Below, piece after piece: positions 40,988 to 41,663 of a stretch of 64,000 bases of DNA. The DNA lies in NCBI RefSeq assembly GCF_001194135.2, contig NC_068991.1:44261388-44325387 (forward strand), given 5' to 3'. The notes beneath the pieces are model-generated. The model ran no database searches. It was not told the origin of the DNA and saw only the letters and a list, made by a program, of their open reading frames with translations. The position numbers and the translations under genes are program-made. The stretch's first letter is position 1. Every line of letters starts with the position of its first letter. This DNA is from Octopus bimaculoides. Lineage: Eukaryota.

Positions 40988-41087
40988 ACAATAATGAAGG
41001 ACAAGTGGATGAATATAGGTTTCGAGGATGATGAACTTAAGCCTTATGTAGAACCACCACCTGACATAAATGATCCACTTCGAATAG
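40988..41087 (+). CDS. MARK: MARK alternative exon A (100 nt): [33 protein letters not shown]
   Basis: gtaacag|ACAATA...CGAATAG|gtaatt; phase 0/1; matches the MARK kinase C-terminus/CD motif/linker (vertebrate type IMKDxWxNxGxExxELKPY). Confidence 0.93.
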
Positions 41088-41563
41088 GTAATTGTATATA
41101 TATAAAAAAAAATGATGATCCTATGAGCTTGTTCAGATTTTGTTTCCATACCATGGGAGTGGAAGCAACAGGCTGAACAGGCATTATTATTCTTATCATC
41201 ATCACTACCACCACCACCACCACCACCACAACCACCACCACCATTATGTTTACAATTACTTTTATTTGTCGCCCTGCTGATCTAGTGGCTGTGCTAAGGG
41301 ACATCCTGCGAAGGTCTGCTGCTGCAGTGCAATATGTCTCTTTTCTCAGGACACCAGGATTCTTACAGAGAGATACCTGTCAAAAATCCTTTGCATGCAG
41401 TTTTTTTTTTTTTTTATTATGCATTTTTTTTTTGTTTCAGAGCTTTGTCGTATTTGTTGTTGTCATCTCTAAGTGGGCTTTGTGGTTGTCTCTTCCACCC
41501 ATTTGTTTGCTTGATTATCTTATTTTTTATGTGCTGAAAATCAGTTTGTCTTTTGGTCTACAG

Positions 41564-41663
41564 ACCATTATGCGAGACCGCTGGATCAATGTTGGGTATG
41601 AAGATAAAGAATTAAAGCCTTACAAAGAGCCATGTAGAGACAAGCTTGATCCTAAGCGCATAG
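41564..41663 (+). CDS. MARK: MARK alternative exon B (100 nt): [33 protein letters not shown]
   Basis: ctacag|ACCATT...CGCATAG|gtaaat; phase 0/1; same length as exon A, 21/33 residues identical, no stops. Confidence 0.9.

Follow-up and report, generated by a model that had tools for sequence, protein, structure and literature searches.

MARK/PAR-1 kinases govern cell polarity, and their substrates include tau and other MAPs. The octopus gene considered here carries two consecutive versions of one short stretch of such a kinase. The gene lies in a 64,000-nucleotide stretch of Octopus bimaculoides DNA (contig NC_068991.1), referred to throughout as the window, and it raises a direct question. 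Are the two versions, exon A and exon B, alternatives of which each productive mRNA holds exactly one, and if so, how old is the choice, what enforces it, and what does it alter in the protein? A first-pass annotation had proposed a tandemly duplicated and probably mutually exclusive pair. Overall, we think it very probable that A and B are ancient duplicates of a single 100-nt MARK/PAR-1 exon, with exactly one copy in every productive mRNA.

Two versions of one exon in an octopus MARK/PAR-1 gene

A tblastn search of the window, with a MARK2 sequence serving as an alignment guide only, places the kinase-domain exons of a MARK/PAR-1 gene on the + strand, in their proper order between about 7.9 kb and 41.7 kb. 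The protein XP_014770441.1, 'MARK2-like [Octopus bimaculoides]', is matched residue for residue through exon B by one AG/GT exon chain only. The features needed below are as follows, the first seven exons being placed by tblastn and by the XP_014770441.1 chain.

7923-7976 (start approximate), + strand, upstream kinase-domain exon
21554-21602, + strand, upstream kinase-domain exon
23207-23272, + strand, upstream kinase-domain exon
25271-25341, + strand, upstream kinase-domain exon
26451-26507, + strand, upstream kinase-domain exon
27592-27727, + strand, upstream kinase-domain exon
29488-29588, + strand, upstream kinase-domain exon
32845-32964, + strand, constitutive kinase exon before exon A; 120 nt, 40 residues, complete last codon, donor GAG/gtaaga (+5G)
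40988-41087, + strand, exon A (A-type, canonical-like); 100 nt, AG/GT, donor TAG/gtaatt, no +5G
41088-41563, + strand, intron between exons A and B; 476 nt
41564-41663, + strand, exon B (B-type); 100 nt, AG/GT, donor TAG/gtaaat, no +5G
41599-41601, + strand, TGA that comes into frame when A is joined to B; 62 nt upstream of the exon B donor

Nine exons encode the MARK-type catalytic domain, and a 251-residue query that includes exon B is 100% identical to XP_014770441.1 and shares 88-90% identity with named MARK proteins. Neither human nor mollusc UBA peptides, used as queries, found a UBA exon in the window, including the 22 kb after exon B, and KA1 exons are absent as well. Both domains exist in orthologous loci and proteins: a UBA exon is present on the contig in three of the loci described below (L004, L006 and L012), and the Mytilus protein P0394 has UBA and KA1. 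The window comes from a draft assembly with seven runs of N, and the octopus UBA exon lies beyond the window end or inside one of these gaps.

Exons A and B are neighbours on one strand, flanked by the 32845-32964 exon on one side and by the off-window UBA exon on the other, with no exon between them, and each is free of stops solely in the frame set by the exon ending at 32964 (phase 0 in, phase 1 out). The geometry originally described, two 100-nt exons 476 nt apart with AG/GT borders and phase 0/1, can be read directly from the DNA, and our recomputation agrees with the divergence first given for them: 21 of 33 residues are identical (62 of 100 nt), 9 of the 19 identical residues other than Met and Trp have different codons, and neither copy contains a stop. 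Across the whole 64-kb window the MARK2 search finds this segment exactly twice, with E = 9e-12 and 1e-10. Exon A encodes the end of the kinase C-lobe and a fully acidic common-docking (CD) motif, EDDE, followed by the tether that leads to the UBA domain; its net charge is -4. Exon B encodes the same protein segment with an interrupted docking motif (EDKE), extra basic residues in the tether (K21, R25, K27 and K31) and a net charge of +2.

A gapped draft can collapse or duplicate haplotypes, and the seven N gaps, together with a duplicated block that flanks the gap at 46780-46846, make an assembly artefact worth considering. The copies, however, are only 62% identical in nucleotides, a related octopus has exon B with the same flanks in its own, independent assembly, and the pair is present in six other assemblies, so that we give this explanation practically no weight. 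The related octopus contig (L005) begins 130 nt downstream of exon A, and the octopus-octopus comparison covers the exon B side only.

The duplicated block is itself an ORF string of about 60 residues (NEEGTRLLEFCDANNLLI*NTNFRKLASYLIIYQSGESASQIDFILTRQWDAWLLLNTKTLPG) found on both sides of the gap (window 46141-47049), and it is probably an assembly duplication. ORFs at 46.1-49 kb resemble by eye the endonuclease and reverse transcriptase (RT) of non-LTR retrotransposons; the repeat-like ORFs at 46-49 kb had no match in a Pfam scan.

Existing gene models give a one-sided picture of exon use. XP_014770441.1 joins 32964 to 41564, using B and skipping A. Past exon B this model is chimeric: it runs through the B donor into the intron (GKSTLCNVYQ...), draws its C-terminus from an intronic ORF at about 44.4-44.6 kb and a repeat-derived ORF at about 46.4-46.6 kb (window 41664-46650), and is without UBA, spacer and KA1. 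The choice of B in so poor a model may not be RNA-based. The upstream exon, a B-type exon and the UBA exon are also joined in Nucella lapillus MARK3 and in Mytilus californianus isoform X3, and an A-type exon occurs in none of the mollusc models retrieved (octopus, Nucella, Mytilus). We infer use of the A-type exon from its conservation and its canonical-like form. The locus flags a problem of annotation: current models take up a single copy, and the old one for octopus is a chimera. The locus also qualifies the novelty first suggested for the pair: our literature search found no paper describing it in MARK/PAR-1, but B-type exons were already contained in the octopus, Mytilus californianus and Nucella lapillus models.

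Distribution and age of the exon pair

The 33-residue B peptide was compared with 1.84 billion representative proteins, and the contigs behind the matches were then examined. Many matches are short ORFs, which are single exons running into intron on genomic contigs, and these sort into two kinds, A-like and B-like. Six further loci carry the pair, all with the same layout of an upstream exon, a 100-nt A-type exon, an intron of 350-1027 nt and a 100-nt B-type exon.

L004, A-B intron of 1027 nt, A-type peptide TIMREKWINIGMEDEELKPYLECPADVLDPVRI
L006, A-B intron of 725 nt
L007, A-B intron of 594 nt
L008 (= L009), A-B intron of 350 nt
L010, A-B intron of 633 nt
L012, A-B intron of 565 nt

With the window included, all 14 exons from seven species are exactly 100 nt long, open in frame and bordered by AG/GT, and A precedes B in 7 of 7. 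A UBA exon follows the B-type exon in L004, L006 and L012, where upstream+A+UBA and upstream+B+UBA both read through. The loci are ENA/Logan contigs, and taxa were given to these three by similarity only. On the combined upstream+B+UBA stretch, L006 is gastropod-like, at 91% identity to Nucella lapillus MARK3, and L012 and L004 are bivalve-like, at 90% and 83% identity, respectively, to Mytilus californianus XP_052057796.1. L010/L011 derive from metagenomes of marine plankton, one of them a Tara Oceans run. The same pair is thus met again in gastropod-like and bivalve-like loci; the putative switch is not cephalopod-specific and appears common to such genomes.

The relationships among the 14 exons bear on when the duplication occurred. 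Mean identity is 24.3/33 among A-types and 24.2/33 among B-types, compared with 19.8/33 between the types, and inside one species A and B agree at 18-22 of 33 residues. For each of the exons, the three nearest neighbours are of its own type. Since neighbours are of the same type and A-B identity within a species falls below A-A and B-B identity, the duplication is older than the divergence of these lineages. A neighbour-joining tree unites the B-types, the Nucella and Mytilus proteins among them, in one clade (bootstrap 56%, from an alignment of just 33 columns), and the A-types group with the single exon found in arthropods and nematodes. In four alignment columns, A- and B-types have no residue in common.

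One might suppose instead that the octopus pair is lineage-specific, each lineage having duplicated the exon independently or gene conversion having homogenised the copies. Tandem exon duplication is certainly recurrent, and two other contigs, L001 and L002, duplicate the UBA exon instead. A lineage-specific origin is nonetheless hard to reconcile with within-species A-B identities (18-22/33) below the between-species values of about 24/33, with nearest neighbours that are always of the own type, and with an A-then-B order in 7 of 7 species, and the saturated synonymous divergence argues against the loci being very close relatives. We regard it as highly improbable and return to a single, old duplication.

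Both products of that duplication have been kept under constraint. Between species, pN is 0.146 for A and 0.161 for B, and pS is 0.79 and 0.72, which is saturated; a pN near 0.15 at saturated pS in both types implies that neither copy is a relic. The first-pass annotation had read the octopus pair as an old duplication with both copies selected, and had proposed looking for disabling mutations and for per-exon selection in other species. Six more loci with orthologous types and pN well below pS bear this out, with no disabling mutation in either copy in 7 of 7 species and pN values for A and B that are not near neutral against saturated pS. By these measures the duplication is ancient and both copies are under strong purifying selection. 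If the similarity-based taxon assignments hold, it would predate the split between cephalopods, gastropods and bivalves, which is Cambrian.

These values also speak to the idea that one copy is a decaying or never-used pseudo-exon and that the other alone is spliced. The gene models retrieved, which show B only, are in its favour. Against it, both copies are 100 nt long, open and bordered by AG/GT in 7 of 7 species, pN is about 0.15 for both at saturated synonymous sites, type-specific conserved residues occur in both, and A, the copy missing from the models, is the one nearest to the single exon of arthropods and nematodes. A neutral relic, moreover, would not outlast divergence at the cephalopod-gastropod-bivalve level. 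We consider the pseudo-exon very unlikely, and alternative use of both copies the better reading.

The same tree bears on a further suggestion made at the outset, that the pair stands in for the diversity that vertebrates obtained with MARK1-4. Vertebrate MARK1-4 cluster together, with no correspondence between A or B and any paralogue, which reduces the comparison to a functional analogy. A more specific equation of A and B with vertebrate MARK1/2 versus MARK3/4 (WMN versus WIN) is likewise unsupported by the tree.

Frame, splice signals and the choice between exons

How might single inclusion be enforced? An exon length of 100 is 3n+1, and so having both exons in or both out shifts the frame; single inclusion of either A or B would keep the frame and yield a productive mRNA. 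In 6 of 7 species the A-to-B junction brings a stop within B, which lies 62 nt before the B donor in four species, 38 nt before it in a fifth and 8 nt before it in a sixth; in L007 the joining gives no stop inside B. The TGA predicted earlier for octopus A-to-B splicing, 62 nt before the B donor at 41599-41601, was obtained again on recomputation, and at this distance it is beyond the 50-55 nt premature-stop threshold. The companion claim that skipping both exons breaks the frame follows by arithmetic in the window and can be seen directly in the three other species with a UBA exon on the contig, in all of which skipping brings a stop at the start of that exon. The wrong combinations would be expected to end in nonsense-mediated decay (NMD) or in a truncated protein. 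Frame and NMD are most likely what would enforce single inclusion here, as they are reported to do most often in human and fly pairs (PMC5740500).

Two other mechanisms of exclusivity can be set aside. Steric hindrance is ruled out because the A-B intron is 476 nt long in octopus and 350-1027 nt elsewhere, compared with the less than about 60 nt that it needs, and U2/U12 incompatibility is ruled out because all donors are of the gtaa/gtac type and none reads TATCCTT. A search for docking/selector RNA structure found merely short AT-rich inverted repeats; the A-B intron folds no better than its shuffles (z = -1.1), and the introns are not alignable across species. Two of the pairings near exon A may be recorded, a 26-nt inverted repeat with 85% complementarity in the intron just upstream of the exon (40539-40564 / 40900-40925) and a 15-nt match that pairs the exon A donor (41088-41102) with 41245-41259; the inverted repeats near exon A have no cross-species support.

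The splice signals themselves suggest that the choice is regulated. A G at +5 is present in 0 of 14 A/B donors as against 5 of 6 upstream-exon donors (Fisher p = 0.0004). Exon B and the 350 nt of intron upstream of it are 93-100% identical to the related octopus, compared with about 80-90% for the intron downstream of B. In 4 of 7 species the A-B intron contains the hexamer UGCAUG, the Rbfox-type motif, which in every species is missing from the 300 nt upstream of exon A. The octopus intron has one copy (41392-41397), L006 has two that are 7 nt apart (9392-9405), L010 has a UGCAUG with a GGCAUG 7 nt upstream of it (449-461), and in L004 the motif falls at 9755-9832. The total of 6 against an expected 2.6 is a marginal, post hoc enrichment (P ~0.05). 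Weak donors, conserved flanking intron and possible Rbfox UGCAUG sites together point to regulated exon choice.

The octopus A-B intron also contains a (CCA)n microsatellite near 41196-41240 and long T-runs at 41400-41440, and a (CCA)n tail with T-runs is seen in L005 as well.

Weak donors can be read in another way, as a valve on dosage, in which regulated A+B joining or double skipping generates NMD substrates that set the level of MARK and the protein difference is secondary. Early stops arise from both wrong combinations, weak donors in both copies would permit leaky combinations, and many frame-shifting exon pairs in human do show joining reads (PMC5740500). A poison-exon role alone would, however, leave unexplained the amino-acid conservation in the coding frame and the differences between A and B. 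Such a valve could coexist with isoform switching, and as the main explanation we consider it unlikely. Isoform switching by single inclusion remains our preferred reading.

A much bolder version of this switch can be entertained tentatively, although we would not expect all of it to hold: a pan-molluscan, possibly wider lophotrochozoan, switch more than 500 million years old, controlled by Rbfox-type UGCAUG elements in the A-B intron, that exchanges an acidic for a basic CD motif and tether and supplies a nervous-system or muscle isoform. Were this Rbfox reading true, that isoform would differ in how it docks upstream kinases, 14-3-3 or other partners, and molluscs would have taken a splicing route to the diversification that vertebrates reached with four MARK genes.

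Consequences for the protein and comparison with known systems

The A/B segment aligns between the catalytic and UBA domains of the solved MARK1-4 structures. In these the segment starts with the highly charged ExxE (CD) motif, where x is E or D except for EGEE in MARK4, and continues after ExxE as an extended chain to the UBA domain (PMC2604893). The exon pair covers the final turn of the kinase C-lobe together with the ExxE motif and this tether. A comparison of 7 A-type with 9 B-type sequences gives the following differences.

CD motif: fully acidic in A-type (EDDE, EDEE, EDDD, DDDE); third position always K/R/S in B-type (EDKE, EERE, EESE, EDKD, EERD, EDSE, EEKE, EDRE)
Position 10: I in A-type; M/V/T in B-type
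Position 21: mostly aliphatic in A-type; K/R in B-type (8/9)
Position 25: P/A/Q in A-type; K/R in B-type (9/9)
Net charge: -3 to -4 in A-type; -2 to +2 in B-type

Such differences suggest that the swap may act electrostatically, the choice of A or B tuning how regulators dock on the CD site and tether or how the kinase and UBA domains are arranged. Two 33-residue versions kept for hundreds of millions of years, one with an acidic CD motif and a neutral tether and the other with an interrupted motif and a basic tether, provide ready-made variants for probing the role of this segment.

By all features that can be read from DNA, the putative A/B switch is a textbook mutually exclusive pair of the tandem-duplication kind. 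Pairs catalogued in human and Drosophila are homologous neighbours of equal length and the same frame with conserved splice sites (PMC5740500, PMC3228551, PMC9741552), and they share with A/B the coverage of one structural segment, a 3n+1 length, a premature stop on joint inclusion or joint skipping, an ancient origin and purifying selection. The catalogues differ in what they demand, namely bridging and joining reads, whereas A/B is known here from DNA and gene models. MARK1-4 are named nowhere in the text of the two human exon papers (PMC5740500, PMC9741552). With the pair, the catalogue of exon switches made by tandem duplication would gain a deeply conserved case from molluscs; the mechanism is common, and its general principles are unchanged.

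The closest parallel in our comparison is FYN, in which exons 7A and 7B (FynB/FynT) are likewise an old, conserved, tandem-duplicated exclusive pair in a protein kinase (PMC9741552). The FYN swap exchanges a regulatory linker beside the catalytic domain, altering intramolecular regulation and partner binding and not the catalytic core. The position differs: the FYN pair spans the SH2-kinase linker and the kinase domain's N-terminal part, and the octopus pair the C-terminal end of that domain, the CD motif and the UBA tether. The history differs as well: vertebrate paralogues of FYN each kept one of the exons, whereas MARK1-4 have no such correspondence with A and B in the tree.

In vertebrate MARK1-4 and in the PAR-1 of Drosophila and C. 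elegans, the orthologous kinase is seen with one version of the segment. In vertebrate genomic ORFs these 33 residues are likewise bounded by a CAG-derived Q and a GT-derived G, and so have the same exon borders. This accords with the single 100-nt exon that the first-pass annotation gave for each of vertebrate MARK1-4, as does the lack of any mention of MARK1-4 in the two human exon papers. In insects the segment is fused to the upstream exon (ORFs LVLNPAKRASLE-TIM...), with no 100-nt cassette. Drosophila par-1 is among the genes listed with mutually exclusive exons (PMC3303723); because the insect segment is fused to the upstream exon, these should be other exons.

Two proteins, P0466 and P0504, which we take to be dipteran PAR-1 by sequence resemblance only, have three extra residues (RI-GKT-EALVAMGY) where the insect ORFs compared with them (P0370, P0386, P0427, P0457 and P0463) read RI/GKTGTV.... 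This suggests an insect alternative donor 9 nt downstream, which would be another way to vary the same tether.

The contigs with a duplicated UBA exon, L001 and L002 (Logan SRR12113391 and SRR2029384), come from intron-poor animals with a single linker exon followed by two tandem UBA-like exons, at 2106-2198 and 2804-2917 in L001 and at 1315-1428 and 1509-1622 in L002 (peptides EVLTRMGYSRHDIEESLKNMKYNDVTAIYLLLG and DVLMSKGYAKNDVEDSLKTMKYDDITATYLLLG in the latter). They look like a different tandem exon duplication affecting this part of the MARK gene, and possibly represent another mutually exclusive pair.
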